Sequence record: OP557969.1
Reading direction: 5' to 3' (one strand)
DNA: 64,000 nucleotides
Of this stretch, positions 1 to 64,000 are shown piece by piece. Both the position numbers and the translations under genes were made by a program. The notes beneath the pieces were generated by a model. That model saw only the letters and a program-made list of their open reading frames with translations, did no database searches and had not been told where the DNA came from. The stretch's first letter is position 1, and every line of letters begins with the position of its first letter.

Positions 1-16
1 CCTTTTCAAAAAACTG

Positions 17-265
17 ATGTATGTTAATGATAATAATTATAGTGTTAAATTATCATTCGATATTGTGTTGGATAAATTAACATTTACGGAATACACTACC
101 AATAAAACTTCATTTTTACACAAGTATAATAGAAAGGTATATAATCATATTTCTAGTTATTTAAATGAAGAATATTACTTTCAACAATCTACAATAGAAA
201 AAGTATTATTCAGTACTGAAGAATTAAAAGAATTATATTATTGGTATGAGAAATTTACATCTTGA
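17..265 (+). CDS. hypothetical protein, EExxFQxS[TL][IV]-motif family (may be 5'-truncated)
   Basis: Contains EEYYFQQSTIE. Confidence 0.7.
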   Translation: MYVNDNNYSVKLSFDIVLDKLTFTEYTTNKTSFLHKYNRKVYNHISSYLNEEYYFQQSTIEKVLFSTEELKELYYWYEKFTS

Positions 266-320
266 CATTATGGTGGTTTCATCTTACAATACAAGATAAT
301 GATGCGTTGAGGACAAATTC

Positions 321-731
321 ATGAGTATAGATTTACACAATGAACTACAATATTTTTTTGATTTGGATATATCACGTTTGAACAGACATGTCAATCATAT
401 ATCCAGAACTATATGGTGGTCTGATGAGGCTGATGAACCAAGGATTCAGATTTGTGATAATTTGTCAGTTTTAAGATTGTATGTTCTTGATACCGAAATG
501 AATATTATGATAACATACGTACCACCCACAAACAAACTTCTAATCAACACACTAAACCCAGATACAGTACTGAAAATTTTTGATTTGGATACGATACAGT
601 CAAGCGAAACACTATTCCAACGTTCATTGGTTGATGATCTAGGGGGTATTTCTTTTGACGATATATTAAAATTGAAGAAGATGTATAATGAATTATTAGA
701 GATTAAAAATACCGTTCTAATGGGGATTTAA
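321..731 (+). CDS. hypothetical protein, EExxFQxS-motif family
   Basis: SETLFQRSLVDDLGGISFDDI; RBS-like GAGG upstream. Confidence 0.85.
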   Translation: MSIDLHNELQYFFDLDISRLNRHVNHISRTIWWSDEADEPRIQICDNLSVLRLYVLDTEMNIMITYVPPTNKLLINTLNPDTVLKIFDLDTIQSSETLFQRSLVDDLGGISFDDILKLKKMYNELLEIKNTVLMGI

Positions 732-732
732 T

Positions 733-1137
733 ATGGTAAGTTTATTAGATATTGATAATACTAGTCTGGTTCTGGTGAAAAAAGGATTAATTCCAAATTC
801 TAACAAGATTGATTATGCTGTTATTGAAACAAATATTGGGAATATCTGGTACGACTCTGAAAGAGACATTGTGTTTAGCTGTGTAGATAGTGATCGTTCT
901 GAGTGCTGTAGGGTTGGGCATGACGGACAATTTATTTTCGAATTTCGTTTCTGGAAAGATTCCAGATTTCACCAGGAGCATGTTTCAATTACAAATGTAA
1001 ATTGTAATGAAGAATCATTCTTCATGGAAAGTACTATTAATGATTTTGGCTCAGTTACTTTTGAGTACTATAAAAAAGTATATAACTTGTACAGAGAAGT
1101 AATTCGAATCATAAGAACCTCTGAGGGTCAAGATTAA
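733..1137 (+). CDS. hypothetical protein, EExxFQxS-motif family
   Basis: NEESFFMESTINDFGSVTFE. Confidence 0.85.
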   Translation: MVSLLDIDNTSLVLVKKGLIPNSNKIDYAVIETNIGNIWYDSERDIVFSCVDSDRSECCRVGHDGQFIFEFRFWKDSRFHQEHVSITNVNCNEESFFMESTINDFGSVTFEYYKKVYNLYREVIRIIRTSEGQD

Positions 1138-1138
1138 T

Positions 1139-1516
1139 ATGACTACTACCATATATAATATTTTAGGTAACTTGAATAAAAACATAGATAATGATTTTGT
1201 TATAGTTGAAAACACTAAAAATATAATTCATCTACCATTGGGTACACCAGATAGGTTAATTTTTAACATATACGCTAACACACTGACATACATACACGAT
1301 GGTATGGTTATCGTTGTGCTTGATATTAAAGAAAATACAATACGATATGCATATGACTTTAACGTTTATTGGTCAAGAACTCATAGTATTGATATTGAGG
1401 AAGATGAACTTTTTCAATTATCGTTAATTGAGAAAAATGTAATAGGAGTTACCGAGATTGGTATTGTTAAAAAAGCTTTGGAATATGCAAATAAAAAAAT
1501 AAATGGCGAACTATGA
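1139..1516 (+). CDS. hypothetical protein, EExxFQxS-motif family
   Basis: EEDELFQLSLIE. Confidence 0.85.
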   Translation: MTTTIYNILGNLNKNIDNDFVIVENTKNIIHLPLGTPDRLIFNIYANTLTYIHDGMVIVVLDIKENTIRYAYDFNVYWSRTHSIDIEEDELFQLSLIEKNVIGVTEIGIVKKALEYANKKINGEL

Positions 1517-1977
1517 TGAACATTGAGGAAATAAAAAATCATTTTGAAATTGCATTGTCTTGTGATTTTGATAGTTGTTATGTTACTGAACCAGAAGATA
1601 TAATTAGAATTTCCACATCGTTTTCAGAAGAATACAATATACTCATTGAGAAATCATATGACAGAACCGAACTCTCATTTTACAATAAGGATTTACGAAC
1701 AACATCATTTATATTATTATATAACACAACATCGGATATAATAGAGATTATAACAAGTAAAACAGGTAAAACAAGTAAAGATGTACATTATGAGACTATA
1801 CCAAATGTAAGTTATTGTTCAACAGAAGAAGGATACTTCCAGGAATCACTTATTAAAAATTTATCAGTTAGCTATTCTGATTTAAGCATTATAGTCAATT
1901 ATGTGGAAAAGTTAAATGATTTCGTTCTATCGATGTTTGATATCACTGAGCAAAAACCAAAGGAAATCAAATGTTAA
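1513..1977 (+). CDS. hypothetical protein, EExxFQxS-motif family
   Basis: TEEGYFQESLIK; ATGA overlap with previous gene. Confidence 0.85.
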   Translation: MMNIEEIKNHFEIALSCDFDSCYVTEPEDIIRISTSFSEEYNILIEKSYDRTELSFYNKDLRTTSFILLYNTTSDIIEIITSKTGKTSKDVHYETIPNVSYCSTEEGYFQESLIKNLSVSYSDLSIIVNYVEKLNDFVLSMFDITEQKPKEIKC

Positions 1978-2426
1978 ATCCTGGACATTTTTTTCATTTA
2001 CTGGACATTACACCTATACCCGATTTGATCAGCGAGACTAATCATTATCGTGATATTGGAATTGTATCAATGGAATATGATTCACCTGACTTTAAATGTT
2101 ACGTAACATACGATCAGGTGGCTTATGAGTCAGAGCCTGAGATTAAAAAACCATCATATATTTTTGTGTTCATATATAATGATTATAGTGGTGATGTACT
2201 GAATGATGTTCATATTGACACATTTGAAATATGTGGTAATATTATATCAGATGATTCAGCATCCACATTTGATTTGGAATTAAACAGTACTGAAGAGTCA
2301 CTTTTTCAGTTGAGTACTATATGTGATACTATATTAACTCTAGATGACATTGAGAAATTTAAAGAACAGCTTGACGCAGTTCGTGAGATGTTCTATAATC
2401 ATTATCCAGAAGTAGAGTTCAATTAA
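1971..2426 (+). CDS. hypothetical protein, EExxFQxS-motif family
   Basis: TEESLFQLSTICD. Confidence 0.85.
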   Translation: MLNPGHFFHLLDITPIPDLISETNHYRDIGIVSMEYDSPDFKCYVTYDQVAYESEPEIKKPSYIFVFIYNDYSGDVLNDVHIDTFEICGNIISDDSASTFDLELNSTEESLFQLSTICDTILTLDDIEKFKEQLDAVREMFYNHYPEVEFN

Positions 2427-2440
2427 CTAAAGGTAATAAA

Positions 2441-2701
2441 ATGACAAAAGTAGTTCGTAAACGCCACATGATGAATATGGATGAATTTCGTACATTTGAC
2501 AAATATCGTACTATGTTTCGTATGCTGTCACAGGGTCGCCCAATCGTCATTGTAACAGAGAATTACATGTCACCTGAGATTATGTTTGGTAATTACGAAA
2601 AGGTCTTCATGTTGTACGTGAAGCGTGGATTGCTTACAATCAAGACATTAGCTGAAGCAACTGATGATGATATGGATGGAGATAATACCTTTACCATGTG
2701 A
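2441..2701 (+). CDS. hypothetical protein
   Basis: Intact ORF with AAGGT upstream. Confidence 0.75.
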   Translation: MTKVVRKRHMMNMDEFRTFDKYRTMFRMLSQGRPIVIVTENYMSPEIMFGNYEKVFMLYVKRGLLTIKTLAEATDDDMDGDNTFTM

Positions 2702-3083: not shown

Positions 3084-4964
3084 ATGAAACCTATCCGAGT
3101 ACTATCTCTTTTTAATGGAATGAGTGTAGGATACATGGCATTAAAAGATGCTGGTATCCCTGTTGAAAAATATTATTCATCCGAAATTGACAAATTTGCT
3201 ATAGCTGAATCCCAAGCTAACTTCCCCGATATAATCCAATTGGGTGATGTAACTAAGTGGAGAGAATGGGATATTGAATGGGACAAGATAGATCTACTGA
3301 TGGGTGGTTTTCCATGCTTCCCAGCAGGAACTATGATAATGACAAATAAAGGTCATAAAGATATAAAAGATATAAAAATTGGTGATATGGTTCTTACACA
3401 CACTGGACAGTACCAAAAAGTATTGAGTACTGGTGTTAAAAAGGCTCCCACTCGTATTATTACGGGTCAAGGTCACCTTCCAATTGAATGTACCGATAAT
3501 CATCCATTTTGGAGTAGGGAACGTCTAGCCAATAAATGGAATAATCAACGCCGAAGATATGATTCTGTGTTTTCTGAACCGCAATGGGTAAATGCTATAG
3601 ATCTTACTAAACAAAGTTATATTTGTAATGTTAAAAATATTACACATAATACTGTAAGTGATAAAGATGAAAAATATTGGTATTTTGTTGGTCGTTTTAT
3701 GGGTGATGGATGTGCTAGTGTATCTAATAACAAATACAGTATTACTATTGTAGATTCATTAGATAAAGTTGATGAATTGAAAAAATGCTTTGATGATTTT
3801 GGATACAAATACACATTAGCTATTAAAGATAATCATGTAAGATGTGATATATATAGCAAAAAGCTTTATGATGAATTAATATGTATTGGGCATAAATCAC
3901 AAAACAAATGTTTACCACCTGAAATATTCAATGAAACTATCAATAACAAAGAAGCATTTATTAAAGGATACATGGATGCAGATGGTTGTGAGGATAAACA
4001 CAATAAAAAATACAAATTTACCACCACAAGTTATAAAATAGTTCTTGGTATGCAACAGTTAATCTTAGATACTTATCAAAGTCATTGTACTATTAGCCAA
4101 ACTGTTCCAAAAACAAAAAAATATATAAAAAATAAGTTGGTTAATCAGCTTCCGTATTGGAATGTTCATTTTAGCTATAATAAAATTAAAAGAGATGATG
4201 TAATATATGATGAAATTTATATATGGAATCGTGGTGTAAAAAGTAATGTACCAACCGGAGAATGGAAAACCGTTTACAATATTGAAGTTGCAGTAGATAA
4301 CACATATACAGCGAACAATATTGTAGTTCATAACTGCCAAGCGTGGTCAGTTGCAGGTAAACAGGGTGGAATAAATGATCCTCGTGGTATGTTATTCCAT
4401 ACAATGGTTGATATTTACCAGCACATAAAAAGTCTCAATCCAGACTTGAAAGTACTGTTCGAGAATGTTAAAATGAAAGAAGATTTCAAGCAATACATTA
4501 ATAGTGTTCTTGAGATGACACCAGTACTGATAAATTCCCAGCATTATACGCCTCACTTCAGGCAGCGATATTACTGGTACAGTACTGATAAACTTTTTAT
4601 ACCACCTGCATTATCCAATGCACCTAAACTTCAAGATATTATTGAAGATGGTTGGTACACTGACAGAACCGCTTCGTACTGTATAGATGCTAACTATTTT
4701 AAGGGTGGTGATTGTAACCAGTACTTTAATAAATCAAGAAGACAAATTGTTTTCAAAGAACCTGATATCGATAGGGATTTCCTTCTTGAACATGGTAAGC
4801 GAAATGTGGACTATCGTCATTTAACAGTACAAGAGTGTTGCATGTTGCAAGGAATTGATGTAAACTACTTCAAAGTTAGTAGTTCAACACAAGCATACAA
4901 AATGCTTGGGAATGGATGGACTATGCCAGTTATATCACACTTACTACGAGATATATTCTTTTGA
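3084..4964 (+). CDS. DNA (cytosine-5)-methyltransferase, intein-containing
   Basis: Motif I LSLFNG, SEIDK, GDV, motif IV GGFP|CQ split by an intein, ENV, RQRYYW, LTVQECCMLQG, YKMLGNGW. Confidence 0.93.
   Translation: MKPIRVLSLFNGMSVGYMALKDAGIPVEKYYSSEIDKFAIAESQANFPDIIQLGDVTKWREWDIEWDKIDLLMGGFPCFPAGTMIMTNKGHKDIKDIKIGDMVLTHTGQYQKVLSTGVKKAPTRIITGQGHLPIECTDNHPFWSRERLANKWNNQRRRYDSVFSEPQWVNAIDLTKQSYICNVKNITHNTVSDKDEKYWYFVGRFMGDGCASVSNNKYSITIVDSLDKVDELKKCFDDFGYKYTLAIKDNHVRCDIYSKKLYDELICIGHKSQNKCLPPEIFNETINNKEAFIKGYMDADGCEDKHNKKYKFTTTSYKIVLGMQQLILDTYQSHCTISQTVPKTKKYIKNKLVNQLPYWNVHFSYNKIKRDDVIYDEIYIWNRGVKSNVPTGEWKTVYNIEVAVDNTYTANNIVVHNCQAWSVAGKQGGINDPRGMLFHTMVDIYQHIKSLNPDLKVLFENVKMKEDFKQYINSVLEMTPVLINSQHYTPHFRQRYYWYSTDKLFIPPALSNAPKLQDIIEDGWYTDRTASYCIDANYFKGGDCNQYFNKSRRQIVFKEPDIDRDFLLEHGKRNVDYRHLTVQECCMLQGIDVNYFKVSSSTQAYKMLGNGWTMPVISHLLRDIFF
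3315..4334 (+). mobile_element. intein (340 aa) with LAGLIDADG homing endonuclease domain
   Basis: Starts CFPAGT, block B IECTDNHPFW, LAGLIDADG-like YFVGRFMGDG and FIKGYMDADG, ends VYNIEV...IVVHN followed by Cys+1. Confidence 0.93.
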
Positions 4965-4966
4965 AC

Positions 4967-5446
4967 ATGAACAACTACCCCACTTATACAGAACGTGCAA
5001 TGGAATTTAAACGTCAGTTAGCCAAGGATGAATTAGAATTTAATTTGTATTATCCTAATATTGGTGATGAGGTATTGTATAGTTCTCATGCTAAGAATGG
5101 AACTTTACTTCATTCCGGTAAAGGTATTGTTGTGGATATGATTAGTACGTTTAAAGGAAAACTTAATGTAATGTACAAAGTACAAGATTCAAGTACTAAG
5201 TGTATTCATGAAGTGATGCATAATATACCTACATACCCAAAAGATTTTGTTGAGCTAATATCTCGAAGGGAGAAACCTATGTTCTATTGTGGTTACGACA
5301 AATTAACCAAACAAATTATTCCTAATACTATGGGAAAATTTAAAAGTGATGTAAAATCTGAACTTAATAAGAAATTAGGTTCTTCATGGGAAACTGAAAA
5401 CGAGTTTATCGAAATTCGTTTAATTGAAGTTACTATTCTTGATTAA
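4967..5446 (+). CDS. hypothetical protein
   Basis: ORF directly after the MTase; followed by hairpin aaatccacgc-att-gcgtggattttt. Confidence 0.7.
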   Translation: MNNYPTYTERAMEFKRQLAKDELEFNLYYPNIGDEVLYSSHAKNGTLLHSGKGIVVDMISTFKGKLNVMYKVQDSSTKCIHEVMHNIPTYPKDFVELISRREKPMFYCGYDKLTKQIIPNTMGKFKSDVKSELNKKLGSSWETENEFIEIRLIEVTILD

Positions 5447-5489
5447 TTATAAATCCACGCATTGCGTGGATTTTTTCATAGGTGCATAT

Positions 5490-6005
5490 ATGACAGTTCC
5501 GTATGTTAAAATTATTAACAATATCCTTGATTTATGGGAAGATGTTATTACCGGTAAAAAGAATCCAATACCAGTACACGTACTAACTGGAAGACTACAA
5601 TTCAGAATGTCTAACAAAACTGAAACGTTTAATAATCATGATATTTGTATTACATTAAAAACACCTGTTAGTATTGTAATTAAAAAAAATAAAGATGATG
5701 AATTGTCATTATCTATTGGTCGTGATAAAATTATTTTAAGTAATTTGTCTGAAGAAGAATTCTTTCAAAGAAGTACTATCATCGACATGAAAGATTTCAC
5801 ATATGAATCATTAGTAGAACTCAATACACGTTTTGATGATATTCAGGAACGATTGCGACCAATACTCCGTAGAGAAGAAGAAGCCTGGATTGAAAGTATG
5901 AAGAAGATGCAAGAAATGTTAAAAGAAAATATTAACAATCTTGGTAAAACAACAATGGAAATTGGTAAAACTTTAAAACTCAACTTTTCAAAGGATCGTA
6001 AATGA
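5490..6005 (+). CDS. hypothetical protein, EExxFQxS-motif family
   Basis: SEEEFFQRSTIIDM; start moved to after AGGTG. Confidence 0.85.
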   Translation: MTVPYVKIINNILDLWEDVITGKKNPIPVHVLTGRLQFRMSNKTETFNNHDICITLKTPVSIVIKKNKDDELSLSIGRDKIILSNLSEEEFFQRSTIIDMKDFTYESLVELNTRFDDIQERLRPILRREEEAWIESMKKMQEMLKENINNLGKTTMEIGKTLKLNFSKDRK

Positions 6006-6454
6006 AAATCGATGAACTGATTTATATTTTAGGTAACTTGCACAAAATATTGTTACATCGCAACGAGATGAATAAACTAGGGTATAATATAACTAATTTA
6101 AATGAAACATCATTTAAATATAACTCAATCACTGGTGGAAATTATAATATTGTGTATTGTCATGAAACTGACCCTGACTGCTATCAACTTACGTTATACT
6201 TTTATCCAACAAACCCTACCATTGTTCAAGACATATCATCAATATCACTTGACCCAGATGGTGAAATGAGTATAGAATATAGCTATGATTCTAAAAAAGA
6301 ATGTTACGTTGAAGATATGAAAAATATGTTTAACGATGCATATGTGTTCCAGCTAAGTACTGTACATGATGTTGGAAGTACTAATGGGCAATTTTGGAAT
6401 ACATGCTATTATCATATGATTGGAATTTGTAAATTACTAAAAGGCGATGATTAA
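6002..6454 (+). CDS. hypothetical protein, EExxFQxS-motif family
   Basis: NDAYVFQLSTVHD. Confidence 0.8.
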   Translation: MKIDELIYILGNLHKILLHRNEMNKLGYNITNLNETSFKYNSITGGNYNIVYCHETDPDCYQLTLYFYPTNPTIVQDISSISLDPDGEMSIEYSYDSKKECYVEDMKNMFNDAYVFQLSTVHDVGSTNGQFWNTCYYHMIGICKLLKGDD

Positions 6455-6837
6455 TGAAATACAGCATTGAAGTACATTACACTACTGGTGATACTGAAAA
6501 TCAATATAACATAGTTAAGACCATTGATGTTCAATGGGATACTAAAGAGGAAGCAGTTGCTGCTTTACAGTGTCTAAAAGAGCATTGGGTGTTTTATATG
6601 AAGCAAGATAATTGCCATACAAAAGAACGCGAAACTATCGTTAAAAATGCTAAACAAAAAGAGTGGTTTGACCCAATTTCACCAGAATATTCATTTTTGG
6701 TTAAAGTTGGTGGCGTGACAGTACCCTTACGAACACCGTGGAACGGCTACTTTGAAACTCTTCATAATGCACGAGTTGTCGCTGTTGACAATCCTGAACA
6801 AATCGATTTTGATTCATTGGACTGGAAAAAATTATGA
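6454..6837 (+). CDS. hypothetical protein
   Basis: Coupled start/stop overlaps on both sides. Confidence 0.8.
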   Translation: MKYSIEVHYTTGDTENQYNIVKTIDVQWDTKEEAVAALQCLKEHWVFYMKQDNCHTKERETIVKNAKQKEWFDPISPEYSFLVKVGGVTVPLRTPWNGYFETLHNARVVAVDNPEQIDFDSLDWKKL

Positions 6838-7277
6838 CAGTACTGCACCAATTGAAGAAGGTTAAGCATCCAGTTGTATATGAGGACTGGAAACGTCAGA
6901 AGCTGATGGGTGACTTTTATTACCCAAAATCTAAAGTTCTTGCGAATTCAAGATGTACATATATCAAACATAACGATAAAGATACAGTATTTGTTGAAAT
7001 GGGGTTCAATCCATCAAATACAATGTTCAGTACTAACCAAACATTTTACAAATTTCATATCCAAAAAGATGTATTTTCTATTAAAATTATAAAACATTTA
7101 GTTGAAGATCTGGTATACAGTGAAGAAAGAGTTCCTTTATCATTAGTGGATATTCCTTATAATAATTTAGAGGAAATGTACTTCCAACAGTTGACAGTAC
7201 AAGAAAACTTTGGTATGATAGGACTTCAAGAGTTAGAGATGATTAAGCAAATTCGTGATATCTACTTTAAGGGGTAA
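6834..7277 (+). CDS. hypothetical protein, EExxFQxS-motif family
   Basis: LEEMYFQQLTVQE. Confidence 0.8.
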   Translation: MTVLHQLKKVKHPVVYEDWKRQKLMGDFYYPKSKVLANSRCTYIKHNDKDTVFVEMGFNPSNTMFSTNQTFYKFHIQKDVFSIKIIKHLVEDLVYSEERVPLSLVDIPYNNLEEMYFQQLTVQENFGMIGLQELEMIKQIRDIYFKG

Positions 7278-7746
7278 CTATGCCAGTACGTAACAGTACT
7301 TCACGCTTTACGCTTCAACAGAAAGCAGATCTTTTGAATATGGCAAACAAAGATTCTAATTATTACTATCTAGTACTCGGTGGTTCAGTTGAAAAGATTG
7401 ACCTACGTGCGTGTATGAAATAACAAAGGGGATAAAATGAGCTTACGTGAATCATGGGAACAATTTAAAGAAGAGATTGGTTATCGTGGTGTTAAGATTG
7501 AACAAATCAATCGTACTGAAAGCATCAAAGCTAGTACTAATGGAACTACCTATGATCGTTATGATGAAAAGTATGGTTTACATTCTAAACCAAAGGATAC
7601 TGAATAATGGTGTATACTAACATTTTTACTGGTATTATGCGTAAGTTTGTTAATGGTATTGGATATGTATCCAATGACAACGGTAGTACATGGGTAAAAA
7701 ATAATACGTCCGAATCTTTAGTGAAAAGTCTTCCGTATTATAAAGC

Positions 7747-7775
7747 TTGACACATGAAAATGGAGTATGTATAAT
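7747..7775 (+). promoter_or_regulatory. consensus sigma70 promoter with an inverted repeat over the -10
   Basis: TTGACA-17-TATAAT; ggagta-tgtataa-tactcc overlaps the -10. Confidence 0.8.
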
Positions 7776-7807
7776 ACTCCAATATTAATCAAATGAGGAT
7801 ATGCGAA

Positions 7808-8380
7808 ATGGCTGGTGTTGATAAAATTTGTGAATTCAGTGGCGATTATGAAGGTTACGAAATGTACAAGTCCAAGCGTAATCACATTCAAGTACTGTCA
7901 AAATATCGAAAACATTTTCGTGGACATAAAGCAACATTGTATATTTTTGAGAATGGATATTCTGAAGTTTTCACAAGTGGTGGGTACAGTACAGCTAATA
8001 TGGCACATATCAACCCAAACCCAACTGAAGATGATTGGAATAGTGGTAATGCTTTTCGTATTTCAATTTTGAATAAAATGAATCGATACGACCGTTATTG
8101 TACATTCTTTGAAAATATTTCAGAATACAAGCAAGCATTAAAGAAATATAATCAACGCTTACTAATGAATTATGATTACATTCTTCATGTACCTACTGTT
8201 CCAGGTCAGGTTAATGGTCTGTACACGAACAGTACACATGATTTAACTGCGGTGAAGCGTCGTCTTAAACGTATGTTGGGTCATGGAAAACTAACTATCA
8301 AGATTATGCGTAATGAATCTATGTATAACTTTTTAAATGTTCTTCATTACACATTAAAGGATAAAAATGGAAGCGATTAA
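7808..8380 (+). CDS. hypothetical protein
   Basis: GAGGA RBS at about 7795; long ORF. Confidence 0.8.
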   Translation: MAGVDKICEFSGDYEGYEMYKSKRNHIQVLSKYRKHFRGHKATLYIFENGYSEVFTSGGYSTANMAHINPNPTEDDWNSGNAFRISILNKMNRYDRYCTFFENISEYKQALKKYNQRLLMNYDYILHVPTVPGQVNGLYTNSTHDLTAVKRRLKRMLGHGKLTIKIMRNESMYNFLNVLHYTLKDKNGSD

Positions 8381-8564: not shown

Positions 8565-8566
8565 TT

Positions 8567-55333: not shown

Positions 55334-55378
55334 TAAAAATCCAGTACTGAATAGTACTGGATTATTTGAGGTAGAGCA

Positions 55379-56067: not shown

Positions 56068-57213
56068 TTATTTTTTCCAAGGAAGTAACGAAGTTGGAAT
56101 TTTGATAGGTATATTTGATGAAACAACATCAGGAAAATTTGCATCCCCACAAACATACAAATTATCGTCTTCGTCTATCAACAATATATAGTTGTAACTT
56201 CTACAAAACCCATTTAAACTTCTTCCCTCTAATGCAGATAAATTTATTTCAGTGAATTGTGTTATATATGTTTCATTTGAACCAACACCACATTGACCAT
56301 TAGCATTTATACCACAAGTAAGCAATTTATTATTGTTTTGAATTATACATGATGGTCCAGCAAGGTTCGTACCTAGTTCACCTACAACATTAACCTCACC
56401 TTGTAATGATAAATTTGGAATCACTGTACTCATTGGGACACGAGATGTATTTCCAACACCGGCTTGACCTGAACCATTAGTGGATGCTACTTTAACAGTA
56501 CCGTCATTAAGAAAAATATAAGATGTTTCGATTGTATTAACTGCTTGAGTAGCTGATGTTATTGACGTATCCTGTTTGAAACTAAGTACATTTGTTGTTG
56601 TCGAACCAGAGATAAATGTAGCACCTGCGTACCAATATGTTCCATCCTGGAGTACTAAACCAGTACTTCTAATTGAACACCCAGCACTTCGAACATTTTC
56701 TATATGACTATATGTAAAGGTTGATACAATTGAAGATTCACCATTACCGAATACCCCACCAGTACCTGCACCACAGAAAAACCATTTGCCGTTTTTCAAA
56801 AATACACGCATACAAGCAGAAATAACCACACTATCAATATCACTTGCAGTTACACCAAAATCGGTAAAGAAATGAGTTATATCAATCCAATTGCCACCAG
56901 TATTTGATGGGAGATGTGGAATTACCACTCTAGTCCCTGTGTACCAGATTGTATCATCATCTTTAATAACAAGCGTACCTTGAACACCACCCCAATACCT
57001 GATTACATTAGTATTAACAAGTGTCCACTCAGTAGATGATTCCGTTGAGCCATTACCACCTTGACCATATGATGATGAACCACACCAGTATAAATCGCCA
57101 TTTTTATTTAAATAAAATTTTGCATCAGCCGAACATTGTAATCTGTATTTGAATACTGTTTTTGGTGCTGGTGCAATATTTGCATACTTAATCATTCTTC
57201 CAAAAGGTATCAT
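56068..57213 (-). CDS. RCC1-like beta-propeller protein, MLPFGR-leader family
   Basis: True start MIPFGRMIKYANI at 57213; GDLYWCGSSSYGQGGNG and LLTCGINANGQCGVG repeats. Confidence 0.85.
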   Translation of the reverse strand: MIPFGRMIKYANIAPAPKTVFKYRLQCSADAKFYLNKNGDLYWCGSSSYGQGGNGSTESSTEWTLVNTNVIRYWGGVQGTLVIKDDDTIWYTGTRVVIPHLPSNTGGNWIDITHFFTDFGVTASDIDSVVISACMRVFLKNGKWFFCGAGTGGVFGNGESSIVSTFTYSHIENVRSAGCSIRSTGLVLQDGTYWYAGATFISGSTTTNVLSFKQDTSITSATQAVNTIETSYIFLNDGTVKVASTNGSGQAGVGNTSRVPMSTVIPNLSLQGEVNVVGELGTNLAGPSCIIQNNNKLLTCGINANGQCGVGSNETYITQFTEINLSALEGRSLNGFCRSYNYILLIDEDDNLYVCGDANFPDVVSSNIPIKIPTSLLPWKK

Positions 57214-57284
57214 ATTTCCTCCTTTATCCATTGTACTGTATTTAATCCAAATTAGAAAAGCCAGTATCAAGTACTGGCATTGTA

Positions 57285-58634
57285 TTATTGTAATGGAATT
57301 TCAGTGAGTGTTTTATATGTACTTCCGTTATACACCCCTCTCCAATATACTTTACCATCAGTGCTAATCACTAATAATCCATATGTTGTAAACCCAAGAG
57401 TACCACCAACATACATAGCATCTTTGATTCTAATACCAATGTCTTCATATGTAAATGACGCGACCGCACCCGCTTGCCATGAAGGACTAGCGTAGTAATC
57501 ACTATAAACACCATGTGCTTTATATATTGATGTTGTTCCTGGTTCAAAAATTACAGTTCCACAGTAGTTCATTCGTATTTTAGTACTGGATGACGTTGGT
57601 ACATTTATACCCACGTCATCTTTTATCCCTGTGGTTAGAACGTTAAAACCCCCCGCCACACGGTTGACATCATTCTCACCGATTGAATACATACCAACGT
57701 TGTAGCCCATATAATACACACTAGAACTTCCATTCCAGAAAGAAAAACCACCACCATTACCACAGCGATATAGTTGTGAATTTGAGCAGTACATCATACC
57801 TTCGTTTGTTGCATCAAATTCATCTGCTGTTCCGATCACAGCCACTGTAGTCCATGTTTTAATCACTTGGTTTGCACTAGCGGGTTTTTGAATACCATAT
57901 CGTATATTATATCCTTTACCGACTATTGTACCATCTTCTAATTTGGCATAAAGTACAGGTCTATTACCAACAAAATACATATTATTGTGTGACATGTCTA
58001 TTGTACGTCTTAATGAAACTACTTTTTTTGTCAATTGATTATCTTTAGTAAAAGACGTAAAGTAGTAATCCGATGTTGAATTGTTTATTAAACCTTGTAT
58101 TGACAACCCCATATACCAGATTTCTCCCTTACTATTCAAAGCTGCCAAAATACAACTATATTTTGAAGTGTATGTTGGGTTTACTGAAGTTGCTGGTCCT
58201 TTGTCATATCCACCACAGAATACCATCTCCACAACTTCACCTACGTTAGCAAAATAAGAAGATACGTTGATAAAACCATTTGTTATAAAAGGTGCTGTAT
58301 TTATACTTGAATGTGTGAATATCCCATTTGCATATACACCACAAAAATGATATGAACCATCATTATCTTGGACTATTATCCCATTTGATAGTAACCAAAA
58401 ATTGTTTACATTTTTTCTTACTAATTCGATTCCTGCCCCATTAGTTGGTGTTATACCAAAAGAAACATATTTTGTTTGACCAATTCCATATAAATTTCCA
58501 TTTGATGCTAATATTGCACCAAACCAATTACCACCACCATTCTTGTTATGACCCATGCCGATAGAATCGAATTTCTTAACAGTAGGAATTTGTACTTTAT
58601 TTCCATAATTCATCATCCTTCCAAAAGGTAACAT
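57285..58634 (-). CDS. RCC1-like beta-propeller protein, MLPFGR-leader family (divergent)
   Basis: MLPFGRMMNYGNK; GNLYGIG, GEIWYMG, DGKVYWRG repeats. Confidence 0.8.
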   Translation of the reverse strand: MLPFGRMMNYGNKVQIPTVKKFDSIGMGHNKNGGGNWFGAILASNGNLYGIGQTKYVSFGITPTNGAGIELVRKNVNNFWLLSNGIIVQDNDGSYHFCGVYANGIFTHSSINTAPFITNGFINVSSYFANVGEVVEMVFCGGYDKGPATSVNPTYTSKYSCILAALNSKGEIWYMGLSIQGLINNSTSDYYFTSFTKDNQLTKKVVSLRRTIDMSHNNMYFVGNRPVLYAKLEDGTIVGKGYNIRYGIQKPASANQVIKTWTTVAVIGTADEFDATNEGMMYCSNSQLYRCGNGGGFSFWNGSSSVYYMGYNVGMYSIGENDVNRVAGGFNVLTTGIKDDVGINVPTSSSTKIRMNYCGTVIFEPGTTSIYKAHGVYSDYYASPSWQAGAVASFTYEDIGIRIKDAMYVGGTLGFTTYGLLVISTDGKVYWRGVYNGSTYKTLTEIPLQ

Positions 58635-58705
58635 ACTTCCTCCTTATTCATCATACTATATTTAATACAAATAAGAAAAGCCAGTATCAAGTACTGGCTT
58701 TTACA

Positions 58706-59896
58706 TTACAATTGTCTAGGTGTATCCAGAACATATCTATTTGTTTTAGGACCACCATCATCATAAGTTCCGGTTGAATATATATTTTTCATATCAGCAG
58801 TTAGGAAAGTACGCAACGAACCGCGATATATTTTTATTTTATCATACATAGAATATGTTATTTCTGACGGCAATGGACATGCAGTAAATTTACCAATGGT
58901 AGCATCATAACCAACACCCAATGTGCCAGCATAACTACTCGCATTTAAACCAGTTGCATATACACCTGCACTCGTAACTAGTATACTAGATTGTGCTGGG
59001 TATCCAGTATGGATTGAATAATAAGTACCGGGTGGTAATGTAGCACTATTATTTCCTAAAACTCCATTAACATTGCTAGATGTAGTTTTATTTCCCCATG
59101 CTCCATTATTAGCTAATCCACCAACTAGAAACTGACGTGCTCCTGTACTTGGATTCTCTACTAAAGCACTGACAGCACCAAATGAACAAACAGTATATTG
59201 TAATGTTTTTGTATATGTGGTACTTGGCTGATATAAAGTATATTCATTAAATGGTGTCCATGTGGTACTAGTACTTATGCCAGATGTACTACCACCAATA
59301 TATAAATTATTTTGTGTATCAAAAAACATTGCACAGTAATTTGTTGACTGTATTTGTGCAATATCTACATCTGGTGTTACCGCTTTAACAAATGAACCAT
59401 CTGATATTTGATAAGTAGTTCCTGTACCATCTGCGAATTGTCTAGCACTATTCCACCCTGTACTCCATATTGTATTATTATCCATTAAGAAAGTAAACCA
59501 CGTAGTACCTGCATACATTTGTTTAATTGAAGTACTTGAACTTTGTTTGTACAAATTTTCAATATATTGGTTATAACTTAAAAACGTAGTAGTACTAGTT
59601 TCTAAACCAATATGACTACCATATCCACAATAAAAATAATTTAAGTCATTATCTTGAACTAACAAAGTTCCTTGTGTCATCCAGCAATCTTTGACATTTT
59701 CTCTAATTAATGTCCACGACCTTACTGCATTATTATTTCCTCTACCAAACTTCCCCCAACTATTACTGCCTCGTGCGTATAGTTGACCGTCGGTATAAAG
59801 TACAACAACCTCAGTATCAGTTGGTATTATTTTCTTAATTTGAAGTGGGACGGGTACAATATTCCCGTACTTAACTATTCTCCCAAAAGGTAACAT
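58706..59896 (-). CDS. RCC1-like beta-propeller protein, MLPFGR-leader family
   Basis: MLPFGRIVKYGNI; GQLYARGSNSWGKFGRG. Confidence 0.85.
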   Translation of the reverse strand: MLPFGRIVKYGNIVPVPLQIKKIIPTDTEVVVLYTDGQLYARGSNSWGKFGRGNNNAVRSWTLIRENVKDCWMTQGTLLVQDNDLNYFYCGYGSHIGLETSTTTFLSYNQYIENLYKQSSSTSIKQMYAGTTWFTFLMDNNTIWSTGWNSARQFADGTGTTYQISDGSFVKAVTPDVDIAQIQSTNYCAMFFDTQNNLYIGGSTSGISTSTTWTPFNEYTLYQPSTTYTKTLQYTVCSFGAVSALVENPSTGARQFLVGGLANNGAWGNKTTSSNVNGVLGNNSATLPPGTYYSIHTGYPAQSSILVTSAGVYATGLNASSYAGTLGVGYDATIGKFTACPLPSEITYSMYDKIKIYRGSLRTFLTADMKNIYSTGTYDDGGPKTNRYVLDTPRQL

Positions 59897-59966
59897 ATTC
59901 CCTCCTTATTCATTATACTATATTTAATACAAATAATAAAAGCCAGTATCAAGTACTGGCCTATAT

Positions 59967-61136
59967 TTAAACTGGCGAATCTAATATAAATTCTAAACTA
60001 CTAATGCCACCATATGTGACATCTGTTCCCGTGCTATATACAAAATTACCATCAGTTATATAAGTTCGGTTATAACTACCTGCCATCTGTGACTTACTAT
60101 AATCAAACCCATCAGGTACGATTGCTTTGGTATATACTAATGCATTAGTAGATGTACCAATACCTAACATACCAGCTTGTGTAGATTGATTGTAGCCGCA
60201 ACAATATATACCATCTGTTGTAGCAATAACTTGGTTATAATTTGAAGTATTGTTAGCAATGCTTACTACATCACCAGGTGGCATTAGTGATGCTGTTTGT
60301 ACATCAAATGCTCTATAATCTTTGAGAGAACCATCTTTCCCATCTGCTTGTGCACCAAATATTCTTGAACCACCATTTGCGATGATAGTTTTACCAGTGG
60401 GATCAGTGCCTATTGCCATTGCCATTGAAGTACCATTATTCACATAGTACTTTATATTAATTGTATTACTTAAGCTGGTAGGAGCACCATAATATATATT
60501 ATATAACTTACTTCCTGAACTTGTAACTGCATTGACTCTTCCTGTATAAAATAACCATCCTTGGCTTGTAACATAACCGTGCATTAAATTACTTGCAAAC
60601 AATTTAACAGGTAATTGATTTGCTGCGGTAGGAACAGTACTTTTGACGAATCTACCAGAAACATTGTTAATTGTTGTCCCATCACCCAACTGACCATCCG
60701 ACCCTACTCCAGTACTCCATATTGTTTGGTCTGATAGTAACACACTTGTAGTCTGATAACTAACGGCTATATCTAATATTGGTAATGTTAATGTATTGAA
60801 TATAGGCATAGCAGATGTCCATATTGATACTCCTGACCCTTTCATACCAACAGTTGTTGAACTTCCACTGTACCATATTTCATTATTGCTTTTCTTAACA
60901 ACTATCGACGTGGCTCCCATCCAAAAATCTTCAACACCAGAAGTACTAAAAGTCCATGTAGTAACAGTATTTTTGTGACCTAAACCCAAAATACCATATG
61001 CATTATCACCACGCACATATAAATCACCACTGTTTGTTAAAACAGCAACATTATAGTTGTTAGCAAGTATTTTTTTAATATTTGGTTTAGCAGGTGCAAT
61101 ATTCCCGTACTTAACCATCCTCGCAAAAGGTAACAA
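59967..61136 (-). CDS. RCC1-like beta-propeller protein, MLPFGR-leader family
   Basis: TTG start MLPFARMVKYGNI; GDLYVRGDNAYGILGLG, IWSTGVGSDGQLGDG. Confidence 0.85.
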   Translation of the reverse strand: MLPFARMVKYGNIAPAKPNIKKILANNYNVAVLTNSGDLYVRGDNAYGILGLGHKNTVTTWTFSTSGVEDFWMGATSIVVKKSNNEIWYSGSSTTVGMKGSGVSIWTSAMPIFNTLTLPILDIAVSYQTTSVLLSDQTIWSTGVGSDGQLGDGTTINNVSGRFVKSTVPTAANQLPVKLFASNLMHGYVTSQGWLFYTGRVNAVTSSGSKLYNIYYGAPTSLSNTINIKYYVNNGTSMAMAIGTDPTGKTIIANGGSRIFGAQADGKDGSLKDYRAFDVQTASLMPPGDVVSIANNTSNYNQVIATTDGIYCCGYNQSTQAGMLGIGTSTNALVYTKAIVPDGFDYSKSQMAGSYNRTYITDGNFVYSTGTDVTYGGISSLEFILDSPV

Positions 61137-61213
61137 AATTAAATCTCCAAAATTAAAATAATTATATAGTATTTACAAAAAATACTAGTACATATTTCAG
61201 TACTGGCCTATTA

Positions 61214-62335
61214 TTAAAAGGGCAACGGTAACTCAGTAAAAGTACTTACGTCCGGTAAACCATACATTGAATTAGCATCACCACAGTAATACCACTTCGT
61301 AGAATCATGTACCACCGATAAACGCTGTGCACATAACACTTCCTGTATGTCATTAAACACCATCGGGACTAACTCATATGTATCCGCAAATGAAGATACA
61401 CCACCACTCGCATGAAAAGTATTCGTCCCAGCATAAAATAACTGATTAGTGTTCTTACCCACAGCAAATGTCATCAAATCCCCATCATTCTCCCATAAAG
61501 AAGAAAACTTATCAACACTACCAGAAAGCTCTGTGTAAGTACTCGTAATGGCATTCGCCGCCGCCGCATTACCCATCTGTTTATTCAAGTTCTGTCCAGC
61601 AATAAAATATCTCGTTCGTGCACTAGAATCAGTATATAATAACCCAGTGTTCGTAGTCATCATTCCAATGTCCTTAATCGTCATACCAGTCTGTGAATAA
61701 CTTAGATACGAAGTTAAATTAACATTATTACCCAACGAACCGTTAGAACTCATACCACAACGATGTAATATACCACTTGTATCAACGTAGATAGTACTAA
61801 CTAAACTCGTATACAACTCTTGTACATTATTCGCAATAAACACAGCAGTCGCCTTATTACTAACCCCACCAAATGATAGGTTATTATCAAATCCCTTAGC
61901 GTATAATTGATTATTAGTAGTCAATAATCCAATCGTGTAATAAGACATTTTCATATCCCTTACTGTACTCAAATCTACTGCCCCAAATTGATACGTAACA
62001 TCTGTCCATTTGAAAATCTGTGCACTACCAACACCACCCGTTTCAAACCATTTGTCACCACAGTACAATATGCGATTATCCTTAGTAAAGATAACTGTTA
62101 ACAATCCACTACCACACGCAAACTTTACATCACTTCTAACCTTCGTCCAATCACGTACATAGGTAGTGGTGTTATTACCTATACCTAACTTGCCATAACG
62201 GTTATAACCACGCACCCATAAATCACCACTCTTAGTAATTAATAGTAATGCGTCTCCTGTACTTATTATTCGAAATCCCGATCTAGGATCAGGTACAATA
62301 TTCCCGTACTTAACCATTCTCCCAAAAGGTAACAT
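61214..62335 (-). CDS. RCC1-like beta-propeller protein, MLPFGR-leader family
   Basis: MLPFGRMVKYGNI; GDLWVRGYNRYGKLGIG. Confidence 0.85.
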   Translation of the reverse strand: MLPFGRMVKYGNIVPDPRSGFRIISTGDALLLITKSGDLWVRGYNRYGKLGIGNNTTTYVRDWTKVRSDVKFACGSGLLTVIFTKDNRILYCGDKWFETGGVGSAQIFKWTDVTYQFGAVDLSTVRDMKMSYYTIGLLTTNNQLYAKGFDNNLSFGGVSNKATAVFIANNVQELYTSLVSTIYVDTSGILHRCGMSSNGSLGNNVNLTSYLSYSQTGMTIKDIGMMTTNTGLLYTDSSARTRYFIAGQNLNKQMGNAAAANAITSTYTELSGSVDKFSSLWENDGDLMTFAVGKNTNQLFYAGTNTFHASGGVSSFADTYELVPMVFNDIQEVLCAQRLSVVHDSTKWYYCGDANSMYGLPDVSTFTELPLPF

Positions 62336-62438
62336 ATTTCCCTCCTTTATTCATCATCTCATATTTACCCCATAAAGAAAACACTTGACACCCTTTCAGT
62401 ACTGTTGTACAATAGAAGGAATATAAGGAGAACTACAC

Positions 62439-62666
62439 ATGACAAATACACTTAAGTACTACATTAATACTCTGTCCGACCTAGAGTACGCGAAGTTTCT
62501 CGCGGATAGTTCGTGGTTGATTGGACTAAAAACACATAACAGCCCCGGATGCACCCTTATGATGTACAATGCTATTGATACCCTTATAGTGAGTATTTTA
62601 CATAGCAACATCTACGGGGATAACAATAAACAATTATCAAAAATCTTAGTACTGCTATCTCTATGA
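62439..62666 (+). CDS. small protein, terminal tandem array
   Basis: Promoter at about 62385 and AAGGAG RBS; KYYINTLS. Confidence 0.75.
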   Translation: MTNTLKYYINTLSDLEYAKFLADSSWLIGLKTHNSPGCTLMMYNAIDTLIVSILHSNIYGDNNKQLSKILVLLSL

Positions 62667-62875
62667 ACACTATGAGCACTGAACAGTTCTACATCAATGC
62701 ACTACCAACTAAAAGTCTTCAAGAAAGCCTACTGTATACACAAAAGAATCTTAAAAACTTCAAACATTGCCCTAAACTACTGAACTCGTACAGAAATAAT
62801 ATCATAAGTAATGTTTTACAAGGAGAAGAAAGTATGCAATACTATCACATCCTTATCCTTATATTGGAGTACTAA
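62663..62875 (+). CDS. small protein, terminal tandem array
   Basis: Paralog of 63074 (YINALP..LKN...N...N.LQG...Y..I). Confidence 0.75.
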   Translation: MNTMSTEQFYINALPTKSLQESLLYTQKNLKNFKHCPKLLNSYRNNIISNVLQGEESMQYYHILILILEY

Positions 62876-62876
62876 T

Positions 62877-63062
62877 ATGTATAAAGATTTCTATTGCAGT
62901 AAACTACACAAGCAATACAGGGATACATTCCCTAAAGAACCTATGCAAATGAATAGTCCCTTTTATAAATTTGACTTCAGACTGGAGACACGTTATGCAA
63001 TAGAACATCAATTCCATGAAACTAAGTACTTATCTATCATGAACCTCATCTTTAAGTTCTAA
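62877..63062 (+). CDS. small protein, terminal tandem array
   Basis: Start moved to after GGAG; KY..IM.LI C-terminus. Confidence 0.7.
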   Translation: MYKDFYCSKLHKQYRDTFPKEPMQMNSPFYKFDFRLETRYAIEHQFHETKYLSIMNLIFKF

Positions 63063-63073
63063 AAGAGTACTAT

Positions 63074-63286
63074 ATGAAAACTATGAACATACACCAGTAC
63101 TACTTAGATATTCTCCCTAAAGATGTACAGTTCATCCTTAAACAAGAATACAGTACTTTAAAAAACCTTAAAAGAACCGCACCGAATGCATTAATCCTGC
63201 ACCAAAAAAATGTAGTTGATAATATTCTACAAGGTGTACCAGGGACCGAGTACTTTAACATAATAAGGCTAATTACATTACCATGA
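63074..63286 (+). CDS. small protein, terminal tandem array
   Basis: QYYLDILP; NILQG. Confidence 0.75.
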   Translation: MKTMNIHQYYLDILPKDVQFILKQEYSTLKNLKRTAPNALILHQKNVVDNILQGVPGTEYFNIIRLITLP

Positions 63287-63468
63287 ATCATATATTATAC
63301 TATTACCAAAATCTATCCGACAGGGACAAGTACACCCACAACTCCAATGTATGGTACTACAAACGCGGTAGTATAAGAGACAAACAACATTACTTCTGTA
63401 TTGCTATAAAAGAAGCACTAACAACTAAGTACACGTACAGAGCAGTACTGAAACTTATTGATATGTAA
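63283..63468 (+). CDS. small protein, terminal tandem array
   Basis: KYTYRAVLKLI. Confidence 0.8.
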   Translation: MNHILYYYQNLSDRDKYTHNSNVWYYKRGSIRDKQHYFCIAIKEALTTKYTYRAVLKLIDM

Positions 63469-63478
63469 AGAGAATAAT

Positions 63479-63661
63479 ATGAGCATTGAATTGTACTTAA
63501 GTAAATTACAGCCTGGCGATAGATTCATCTACAATAAGTTCGAATCCAACTACAAGAACGGGAGCAACAAATATCGTCGAGGATACCTATATACAAGCAC
63601 AAGAGATGCACAAAACGAAAAGTACACATACAGAGAAGTACTAAAACTTATCTCTATATAA
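63479..63661 (+). CDS. small protein, terminal tandem array
   Basis: YKNG; KYTYREVLKLISI. Confidence 0.8.
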   Translation: MSIELYLSKLQPGDRFIYNKFESNYKNGSNKYRRGYLYTSTRDAQNEKYTYREVLKLISI

Positions 63662-63669
63662 GGTAATAT

Positions 63670-63855
63670 ATGAACAATTTTGAGTACTATACCAATAAAC
63701 TATCTATGCCTGAAAGATCTCATCTCTATGTGTGGAGAAATGCGTATAAAAACGGAAATAAACTTATACAAAGAAATTCCCTTACAGTGTGTACCAATTT
63801 AATTAAAGCAGAGTACCGTACATATATTGAAGTACTGAAACTTATCTCTATCTAA
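63670..63855 (+). CDS. small protein, terminal tandem array
   Basis: YKNG; TYIEVLKLISI. Confidence 0.8.
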   Translation: MNNFEYYTNKLSMPERSHLYVWRNAYKNGNKLIQRNSLTVCTNLIKAEYRTYIEVLKLISI

Positions 63856-63863
63856 GGTACTCT

Positions 63864-64000
63864 ATGCAAGAATTCTATATCTATAATCTCCAGCACAAAG
63901 ATAGATACAACTATAATCAATTCCAAAGGTACTACACAGTCGGGAACATCAAAGATAAAAAACGATACCTGTTATCATGTACTGTAGATGCACAAAACAA
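63864..64000 (+). CDS. small protein, terminal tandem array (runs off the window)
   Basis: MQEFYIYNLQHKDRYNY...DAQN, similar to 63479. Confidence 0.65.
   Translation, partial: MQEFYIYNLQHKDRYNYNQFQRYYTVGNIKDKKRYLLSCTVDAQN

Follow-up and report, generated by a model that had tools for sequence, protein, structure and literature searches.

AGTACT, a palindrome over-represented and maintained at the DNA level in Escherichia phage ph0011 and other RaK2-like phages: a possible self word

Results

The stretch of DNA analyzed here, referred to as the window, comprises 64,000 bp and is 100% identical to positions 284,218-348,217 of OP557969.1, the 3′ end of the 348,217-bp record of Escherichia phage ph0011; coordinates are those of the window unless the record is named. 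Phage ph0011 belongs to the genus Asteriusvirus and groups with the PBECO4/121Q/RaK2-like jumbo myoviruses. In the window 140 genes were called, with coordinates that agree with the deposited annotation. Nearly all of them are short, early-type genes on the + strand, and they are accompanied by seven tRNA genes. The element under study is the palindromic hexamer AGTACT, whose number in the first 23 kb had been put at about 60 in a preliminary description of this DNA. The exact count for that part is 64, and the whole window holds 163 exact sites (1 per 393 bp), about 135-137 of them coding, in all three frames, and 26 intergenic, which corresponds to 2.4 sites per kb in coding and 3.7 per kb in intergenic DNA.

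Base composition predicts 21.8 AGTACT sites in the window, and dinucleotide-preserving shuffles of the same sequence yielded 17.9 ± 3.8, with a maximum of 30. The expectation rose to 66 with an order-3 Markov model, in which the frequency of the GTAC core is accounted for. A maximal-order Markov correction (133 expected) was rejected as over-conditioning, because two thirds of the AGTAC and GTACT pentamers sit within AGTACT and the model is therefore circular. The extended form CAGTACTG, previously noted as frequent, indeed occurs 38 times in the window, where 0.6 copies are expected, and 168 times in the whole genome (3.4 expected). Also in line with the preliminary description, the enrichment of AGTACT extends over the complete genome of 348,217 bp, which carries 748 sites against 118 expected, a 6.35-fold excess or about 1 site per 465 bp. 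This makes AGTACT the most over-represented of the 4,096 hexamers in the ph0011 genome (z 58), and each 10-kb bin is enriched, with 9-64 sites versus about 3.4 expected. Within genes lie 630 of the 748 genome sites (84%).

The excess in coding DNA was measured against a within-gene shuffle of synonymous codons, which preserves the protein sequence and the codon usage of each gene. The coding sequences of the window contain 135 sites, compared with 42.6 ± 5.4 after shuffling (maximum 58 in 500 shuffles), so that the excess persists in the codon-preserving test as it does in the Markov test. Split by frame, 64, 31 and 40 sites were observed where 22, 7 and 13 were expected. The earlier claim that the site is built by synonymous choice in all three frames therefore holds: Ser-Thr is written AGT-ACT in 64 of the 133 dipeptides in the window (48%; 17.8 or 13% expected), Val-Leu is written GTA-CTN in 62 of 153 (28 expected), and xAG-TAC-T occurs 31 times in the coding sequences (5.4 expected). 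Even the dipeptide counts are skewed toward the word, since Ser-Thr is found 133 times instead of the expected 82 and Val-Leu 153 times instead of 102. The excess over the synonymous shuffle is alike in the early, middle and late gene blocks (2.9- to 3.35-fold), as is the use of AGT-ACT for Ser-Thr, which ranges from 40 to 51% of cases.

The density of AGTACT is flat inside gene bodies, rises 1.5- to 2-fold at 120-20 nucleotides upstream of start codons and just past stop codons, and dips over ribosome-binding sites. With this flat density within genes and only a modest rise at their ends, a gene-boundary signal was rejected. Duplication was likewise rejected as the cause of the count, since the flanks are independent for 158 of the 163 window sites and 716 of the 748 genome sites. 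Together these findings show that the AGTACT excess is not explained by codon usage or duplication.

Conservation of the individual sites was determined in alignments with two relatives, using as controls hexamers of all kinds or hexamers of the same composition as AGTACT. In the alignment with PBECO4 (34 kb, 86.5% identity), 75 of 85 sites were intact versus 48% for control hexamers (p 9e-15), and in the alignment with fEgEco12 the corresponding values were 49 of 59 and 46% (p 8e-9). Third-codon positions behaved in the same way: in the comparison with PBECO4, 96.6% were identical inside sites and 79.9% within 15 bp of them (p 4e-8), while in the comparison with fEgEco12 identity was 90.1% inside sites and 75.3% nearby, and this third-position conservation was independent of frame. 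At single sites, the AGTACT that encodes Val-Leu in the nuclease-like gene described below was kept in all six lineages that retain Val-Leu, the Ser-Thr site in the sigma factor gene was kept in four of four lineages, and lineage-specific Ser-Thr pairs were likewise written AGT-ACT. AGTACT is thus positively maintained at the DNA level, and not through protein sequence or codon usage. The preliminary description had called the site positively selected and had named particular methyltransferases and a DUF262 protein as possible agents; the maintenance at synonymous positions bears out the first part of this proposal, but neither the named methyltransferases nor the DUF262 protein was supported, as detailed below. 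On a recombination or packaging signal, another of its options, the data spoke neither for nor against.

These data also bear on the view that translation or transcription produces the excess as a side effect, through either a codon-pair preference tied to the phage tRNAs or a copied promoter or terminator element. The codon AGU, the serine codon that is raised by AGTACT, is decoded by two phage tRNAs, namely tRNA-Ser(GCU) at 17627-17716 (+) and a tRNA-Ser with the unusual anticodon ACU at 18523-18614 (+), and a tRNA-Thr(UGU) is encoded at 19747-19821. In agreement with such a preference, frame 0 (AGT ACT) is the commonest, and AGTACT is indeed found in promoters and terminators. However, a codon-pair effect accounts neither for the enrichment in the other two frames and in intergenic DNA nor for third-position conservation regardless of frame, and it would not favor an exact palindrome when 92% of the genes are on one strand. 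A copied element is at odds with the independence of the sequence contexts and with the fact that only about 8% of all AGTACT sites are embedded in promoters. This explanation is largely refuted, and we consider it extremely improbable.

The turnover of sites was found to be close to equilibrium: lineage-specific sites numbered 21 and the corresponding losses 19. The losses were far fewer than the 58 naively expected, while control hexamers stood at 0.68 of expectation, and AGTACT was lost 2- to 5-fold more rarely than controls. Strict gains did not exceed the neutral expectation (2 observed, 5.5 expected, controls at 0.59). Because strict gains are too few to reveal an excess, site-specific protection from mutation stays alongside selection for function. 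In its extreme form, AGTACT would be functionless and its six bases would simply mutate less often, or be restored by a biased repair system or polymerase, which raises the equilibrium frequency of the word. The reduced loss rate could alone yield a 3- to 6-fold excess, and both the number of strict gains and the balance of lineage-specific sites and losses agree with it. On the other hand, the amino acid composition is bent to the word, early promoters hold the site at fixed registers while late-type elements do not, and the identical trait occurs in phages of E. coli and Xanthomonas. Nor is there a plausible polymerase bias that is hexamer-exact and palindromic. The deamination neighbors AGTATT and AATACT are not depleted, and a drive by very-short-patch-type repair was rejected since the neighbor spectrum lacks its signature. 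Selection for the word and protection from mutation both need an agent that recognizes AGTACT, so that hypomutability still calls for a sequence-specific factor, and as a full explanation we regard it as very unlikely.

The excess is shared by the relatives of ph0011. A 6- to 13-fold excess of AGTACT was observed in PBECO4, fEgEco12 and RaK2, as well as in Salmonella phage Munch, Cronobacter phage GAP32, Serratia phage BF and Xanthomonas phage XaC1, and the same range was found in all 12 of the 12 IMG/VR loci of the RaK2-like clade. In contrast, no enrichment of AGTACT was seen in Vibrio jumbo phage 2.275.O, a distant relative (3 versus 7.9 expected), in T4 (6 versus 6.4) or in PA5oct (2 versus 6.8). 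Since the trait is present in all RaK2-like lineages sampled, on hosts from E. coli to Xanthomonas, and absent from these outgroups, it is ancient, phage-intrinsic and independent of the host. The preliminary description would have been contradicted by an enrichment that vanished upon correction for GTAC or that had no counterpart in relatives, and neither was the case. In E. coli K-12, the single host sampled, 100 kb contained 6 AGTACT sites where 23 were expected; this equals 0.06 sites per kb, as compared with 2.15 per kb in the phage, a difference of about 36-fold. With respect to this one host, AGTACT is therefore rare in non-self DNA, as would be expected of a self word. We found no description of the AGTACT feature of the RaK2-like clade in the searchable literature.

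The information in the sites is confined to six bases. In phages of E. coli and Klebsiella, an adjoining C before and G after the word contribute 0.4-0.55 bit, a value that is lower in other lineages, and flanks farther away carry at most 0.17 bit, even in the 73 unconstrained intergenic sites outside promoters. One-mismatch neighbors of AGTACT are merely 0.5- to 2.6-fold represented. Because only the six bases matter, in contrast to a long degenerate operator, recognition would have a precision like that of restriction or modification enzymes. The flanks are symmetric and the word is its own reverse complement, so that neither the asymmetry nor the orientation bias of Chi or FtsK-orienting polar sequences (KOPS) is seen. 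Gaps between sites are distributed almost as in a Poisson process (coefficient of variation 1.08). Helical phasing or arrays were not detected, except for a pair of sites in promoters at a distance of 20 bp, which is the sole over-represented distance.

The word occupies fixed registers, with the site starting at about -40 and/or -20, in 20 of 36 strong sigma70-type early promoters, compared with 10-20% of late-type and middle-type elements and 21% of random windows. In the first register the word lies directly against the -35 element, giving AGTAC-TTGACT or AGTAC-TTGCAA. In the second it ends 1-2 bases before the -10 element, either as AGTACT-G-TATAAT or as AGTACTGATATAAT, a form in which the TG of an extended -10 comes from the word. 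Both registers, exactly 20 bp apart, are combined in some promoters. The register on the -10 side recurs in PBECO4, fEgEco12 and RaK2 despite unrelated spacers. The promoter placements given in the preliminary description, for a family around 16110 and for single sites near 32940, 45515 and 62398, could all be confirmed. The promoter at 16110-16137 (+) has a TTGACT box, 9 nucleotides, AGTACT, a G and TATAAT, so that the site lies in the spacer by the -10 element, and a second copy of this type is present at 16522-16549 (+), again with AGTACT in the spacer. Two sites at the 20-bp distance are found at 16828-16861 (+), one abutting the -35 as AGTAC-TTGACT and the other giving the TG of the extended -10 in AGTACTGATATAAT, and at 17587-17620 (+), upstream of tRNA-Ser(GCU). 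The promoter at 18484-18512 (+), upstream of tRNA-Ser(ACU), has a spacer site at 18499 and an extra site at 18472. With unrelated spacers, the order TTGACA, 9 nucleotides, AGTACT, G, TATAAT is repeated at 32926-32953 (+) and 45502-45529 (+), and the promoter at 62385-62413 (+), TTGACA-17-TACAAT with AGTACT in the spacer, matches 11 of the 12 consensus bases. Outside the window, record positions 4983-9240 contain early-promoter cassettes made up of an A-tract, AGTAC-TTGCAA, 16 nucleotides, GTATAAT, a conserved leader hairpin (GGGGAA...TTCCCC), a ribosome-binding site and a short gene.

Inverted copies of the word also form hairpin arms. Terminator placements had previously been indicated near 55337, 57260, 58680 and 59942, and hairpins were found at each of these places, with folding z-scores of -3.7 to -4.8. 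The terminator-like hairpin at 55338-55363 has the arms CCAGTACT and AGTACTGG, which contain the sites 55343 and 55353 (-15.1 kcal/mol, z -4.6). The hairpin at 57260-57278 (-), with the arms GCCAGTA and TACTGGC, is located 3′ of an RCC1-like gene (z -3.7), and hairpins with CCAGTA and TACTGG arms are present at 58676-58702 (-; -14.1 kcal/mol, z -4.8) and 59940-59962 (-). The region 56068-62335 (-) holds five paralogous RCC1-like genes of about 380-450 amino acids, annotated as 'DNA condensation protein', and a near-identical GCCAGTA/TACTGGC terminator hairpin follows at least three of the five. A further symmetric element is the 12-bp perfect palindrome TTCAGTACTGAA at 19177-19188, with additional copies starting at 209, 14706, 19298 and 21087, and 19 copies in the genome where 0.04 are expected. 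The folding of TTCAGTACTGAA as RNA was no better than chance, and a search of Rfam gave no match in the densest 26 kb. In the one raw RNA-seq run inspected, no reads mapped to 15300-21200.

As potential agents, we inspected the methyltransferases and the DUF262 protein. The protein encoded at 50241-51077 (+) is a putative N6-adenine methyltransferase of 278 amino acids without a match in Pfam or the PDB. It is found essentially in ph0011 alone, its nearest relatives being proteins of rV5/phi92-like phages with 37% identity, and because of this limited distribution it cannot explain a clade-wide trait; moreover, its gene carries no AGTACT. The DUF262/GmrSD_N-DndB-like protein encoded at 48777-49982, proposed earlier as a binder of the word, is confined to ph0011 apart from a relative with 22% identity in GAP32 and was dismissed for this reason. 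Both genes constitute a ph0011-specific island at 48777-51077 (+), which has no counterpart at the syntenic place in PBECO4. With one site in the DUF262 gene and none in the rV5-like methyltransferase gene, this newly acquired island is nearly AGTACT-free, in line with a recent acquisition. The third protein, encoded at 3084-4964 (+), is a small C5 methyltransferase interrupted by an intein of ~340 amino acids (Hint plus a LAGLIDADG homing endonuclease) that follows residue ~77. Its N-extein is most similar to the catalytic domains of eukaryotic DNMT3A/B (1e-18), which fits the report that RaK2 DNA contains 5-methylcytosine in CpG (m5CpG), as found by bisulfite sequencing (PMC3622015). C5 methyltransferases have been reported in RaK2 and CBB. 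As AGTACT contains no CpG, this DNMT3-like, CpG-type enzyme was also rejected as the cause, and the earlier suggestion that the word is the target of the enzyme at 3084 or of that at 50241 was not borne out.

One methyltransferase alone was found in all enriched lineages that were checked, a small Dam-family enzyme (PF05869) encoded outside the window. Its gene overlaps a cytidylyltransferase-like gene by 4 nucleotides (record 62403-63457), and the pair is syntenic in all clade members listed; it could represent a plain GATC methyltransferase or a part of a DNA-modification module. The Dam enzymes of T1 and VT2 methylate GATC. So does M.Phi93DAM, a characterized relative with ~44% identity (PMC4190342), and in several clade members the GATC count is close to the expected one, as though these sites were protected. 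Judged by homology, from which specificity can shift, no clade methyltransferase checked had a specificity for AGTACT or GTAC.

It is conceivable that AGTACT or its GTAC core is nonetheless the target of a phage methyltransferase or base modifier, and serves as an epigenetic self-mark, in strand discrimination or in sequestration of replicated DNA, as GATC does through MutH and SeqA, or in methylation-sensitive early promoters. A strict 6-bp palindrome is typical of type II methyltransferases, the translationally coupled Dam-family enzyme is present in all enriched lineages checked, the density of 1 site per 465 bp is similar to that of GATC in E. coli, and the sites lie at promoter positions where methylation affects RNA polymerase in other systems, such as IS10 pIN and dnaA P2. 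However, each enzyme checked is either ph0011-specific, CpG-type or related to a GATC methyltransferase, which leaves this model without a candidate enzyme unless the specificity has shifted. Methyltransferase targets are, in addition, usually neutral or avoided and not enriched six-fold, and AGTATT and AATACT show none of the depletion discussed above. We therefore consider modification of AGTACT to be an unlikely basis for the trait.

Palindromes other than AGTACT are widely avoided by ph0011, and this backdrop, assumed in the preliminary description, could be substantiated: 21 six-base palindromes are missing from the whole 348-kb genome, and neither of the type IIS sites GGTCTC/GAGACC and GAGGAG/CTCCTC occurs in it. 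The most extreme case is GCGC, with 0 copies versus 48 expected in the window and 0 versus 282 in the genome. Across all sampled members of the clade, and regardless of host, GCGC is the sole tetramer that is missing. Its frequency is normal in Vibrio phage 2.275.O, T4 and PA5oct, and E. coli K-12 has 7.15 copies per kb. AGTACT and GCGC jointly split phage DNA from E. coli K-12 DNA almost perfectly.

Candidates for a reader were sought among the early proteins that are conserved across the clade. The most conserved of these is a protein of 194 amino acids encoded at 24878-25462 (+) (phrog_16175), with 53-71% identity from RaK2 to XaC1, whereas sigma is only 30-43% identical over the same range. 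It has an invariant D-X8-E-X-K motif, residues D98, E107 and K109 being invariant in 26 sequences and D85-P86 nearly so. The family is limited to RaK2-like phages, plus a 35%-identical homologue in Vibrio phage 2.275.O that keeps D98, E107 and K109. An AlphaFold2 model (predicted local distance difference test score, pLDDT, 88.9) aligned only with PD-(D/E)XK nucleases, at middling scores (VIA-align Z 7.6 for the SPARDA nuclease, 6.5 for Eco15I-N, 5.4 for HincII and 4.1 for HinP1I), while Foldseek gave no match at an E-value below 0.2 and sequence searches gave no hits. A relationship to T4 DenB, suggested by a language model, proved to be a look-alike only (hhalign probability 2.9%). Small dimeric enzymes of the restriction-endonuclease type read strict short palindromes, and the 194-amino-acid protein is for this reason a candidate reader. 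On the basis of the predicted fold, it may be a sequence-specific nuclease for GCGC or AGTACT. Its link to either of these extreme words is weakened by the Vibrio homologue, which resides in a genome with neither an inflated nor a purged word.

This protein is of particular relevance for the idea that AGTACT is a cis signal for a DNA-processing machine, for instance a Chi-like attenuator of an exonuclease from phage or host, a start site of the phage primase, or a site at which a phage endonuclease, with the 194-amino-acid protein as a candidate, would cut or nick to initiate recombination-dependent replication. A uniform density in all frames and discrimination between phage and host DNA are features shared with Chi and DNA uptake sequences, a palindrome functions in either orientation, and ph0011 carries genes for recombination and replication of the T4 type. 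The candidate has the predicted restriction-endonuclease-like fold and is better conserved than sigma. The Chi sequence of E. coli is itself enriched on the + strand, so that the genome evidently gathers such signals. Against these arguments, known processing signals are 8-12 nucleotides long and asymmetric, the idea does not predict the promoter registers, and double-strand cutting at 748 sites would be self-destructive unless the sites were protected. Furthermore, the Vibrio homologue keeps the motif residues in a genome that neither accumulates nor purges the word, and the 194-amino-acid protein fits the purged GCGC at least equally well. A processing signal seems to us quite unlikely.

The counts for Chi (GCTGGTGG) in ph0011 were 18 on the + strand (1.1 expected) and 6 in the opposite orientation (0.7 expected). 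The initial 24 kb of the record contain nine copies (range 3978-23321), with an inverted pair at record positions 3966/3978, and one copy lies at window position 45022. The same end of the record contains, in a 2-kb non-coding stretch, a tandem array of ~19 units of 8 bp (ATGGCTAG / ACGGCTAA type) at record positions 4144-4295, which is iteron-like and may be an element related to origin, packaging or injection.

Discussion

Of the readings considered, the likeliest, which we propose tentatively and at somewhat less than an even chance, is that selection maintains AGTACT as a self word of the RaK2-like phages, and that the word is read by a putative clade-specific protein with two-fold symmetry. 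The proposal builds on the enrichment of the word, its maintenance at synonymous positions, the phylogenetic limits of the trait, the contrast with host DNA, the 6-bp footprint and the registers in promoters and terminators. That the reader is encoded by the phage, and that its binding has an effect, is what we infer from these observations. Such a reader would have to be as exact in its recognition of AGTACT as restriction or modification enzymes are of their targets. Given the roughly 36-fold difference in site density between phage and E. coli DNA, an AGTACT-binding protein would gather on phage DNA and could in this way distinguish the phage from its host. The genome would write the word wherever the sequence permits, that is, in Ser-Thr, in Val-Leu, and in Lys, Gln or Glu followed by Tyr and a codon starting with T. 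In short intergenic regions it would sit where other signals allow it, or be co-opted by them. A dimer bound beside the -35 element or upstream of the -10 element could modulate early transcription, and the word may additionally have been recruited into the arms of terminator hairpins.

Several observations weigh against a self word with a dedicated reader. Both the reader and its action at AGTACT are putative. The gaps between sites are no more even than Poisson, contrary to what a need for regular coverage would demand, and sites of classical helix-turn-helix regulators are longer than a contiguous 6-bp palindrome. As the word furnishes either the T of the -35 or the TG of the extended -10, its promoter registers might result from compatibility alone, with no need for a regulatory role. 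Lastly, the strict gains are not above neutral expectation. Host factors with related half-sites, namely LexA and TrpR, were dropped as readers, given that a Xanthomonas phage shows the trait as well and that the sites are arranged differently.

The self word might be one half of a two-word identity code. GCGC would have been purged so that a phage nuclease, possibly the 194-amino-acid protein, can destroy host DNA, while AGTACT would direct a second factor for protection, organization, replication or transcription to phage DNA. We put this forward as a speculation that is unlikely to hold, but if it were true, such a code would represent a sequence-based alternative to the base hypermodification of T4 in the discrimination of self from non-self.

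Irrespective of the reader, a single palindrome kept at a 6- to 13-fold excess through the history of Asteriusvirus, Alcyoneusvirus, Mimasvirus and Eneladusvirus and their relatives among the Salmonella and Xanthomonas phages implies an activity that reads sequence genome-wide. The excess carries a measurable cost in the choice of codons and even of amino acids. To know the reader could show how large, unmodified phage genomes are distinguished from host DNA and how the clade shuts off early transcription. In practical terms, AGTACT is a diagnostic signature of the clade in metagenomes, and its density dates horizontally acquired genes within clade genomes.

The same hexamer is known from other systems. 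An orphan methyltransferase of Mollivirus recognizes AGTACT (PMC7253447). For neither this enzyme nor the ScaI system (AGT^ACT) has an enrichment of sites been reported, and no homologous enzyme was identified in ph0011. With regard to restriction-site avoidance, ph0011 displays the usual behavior of phages for GCGC, but AGTACT is the opposite at 6.35-fold. Phages are expected to shed short palindromes.

The stoperators of cluster A mycobacteriophages are asymmetric, orientation-dependent sites of 13 bp, present in 20-36 copies per genome and mostly intergenic. AGTACT resembles them in being spread across a whole phage genome and in occupying early promoters as well, with a fixed position in 20 of 36 against a background of 21%. 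It differs in that ph0011 has 748 copies of a 6-bp palindrome, 84% of them inside genes, instead of a degenerate operator of 12-20 bp. With GATC, the target of Dam that is read by SeqA and MutH, AGTACT shares the format of a short palindrome at about one per 250-450 bp. GATC has several protein readers, and within some promoters its state affects transcription. Unlike AGTACT in ph0011, however, GATC is not enriched in E. coli, and no AGTACT-specific methyltransferase is evident among the phage enzymes checked. Chi, which is read by RecBCD, is likewise an over-represented self-mark that alters the fate of the DNA bearing it, a role that for AGTACT is proposed here. Yet Chi is an oriented 8-mer that occurs about once per 4.5 kb and is recognized in single-stranded form by an enzyme that translocates along the DNA, whereas AGTACT is symmetric, ten times denser, and conserved across phages whose hosts differ in their Chi sequences.

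A final comparison concerns the DNA uptake sequences (DUS) of Neisseria and the uptake signal sequences (USS) of Pasteurellaceae, which together with Chi come nearest to AGTACT in their genomic layout. DUS and USS are non-palindromic bacterial words of 9-12 nucleotides that serve in natural transformation, where a dedicated protein reads them as a self-mark. AGTACT, in contrast, is a 6-bp palindrome in a lytic phage, and its reader is a putative one. Like DUS and USS, it is a short, exact word with hundreds to thousands of copies at about one per kb or denser, which is present in all coding frames, conserved within a clade and rare in foreign DNA, and whose inverted pairs form the stems of terminators, as in the four hairpins described here.

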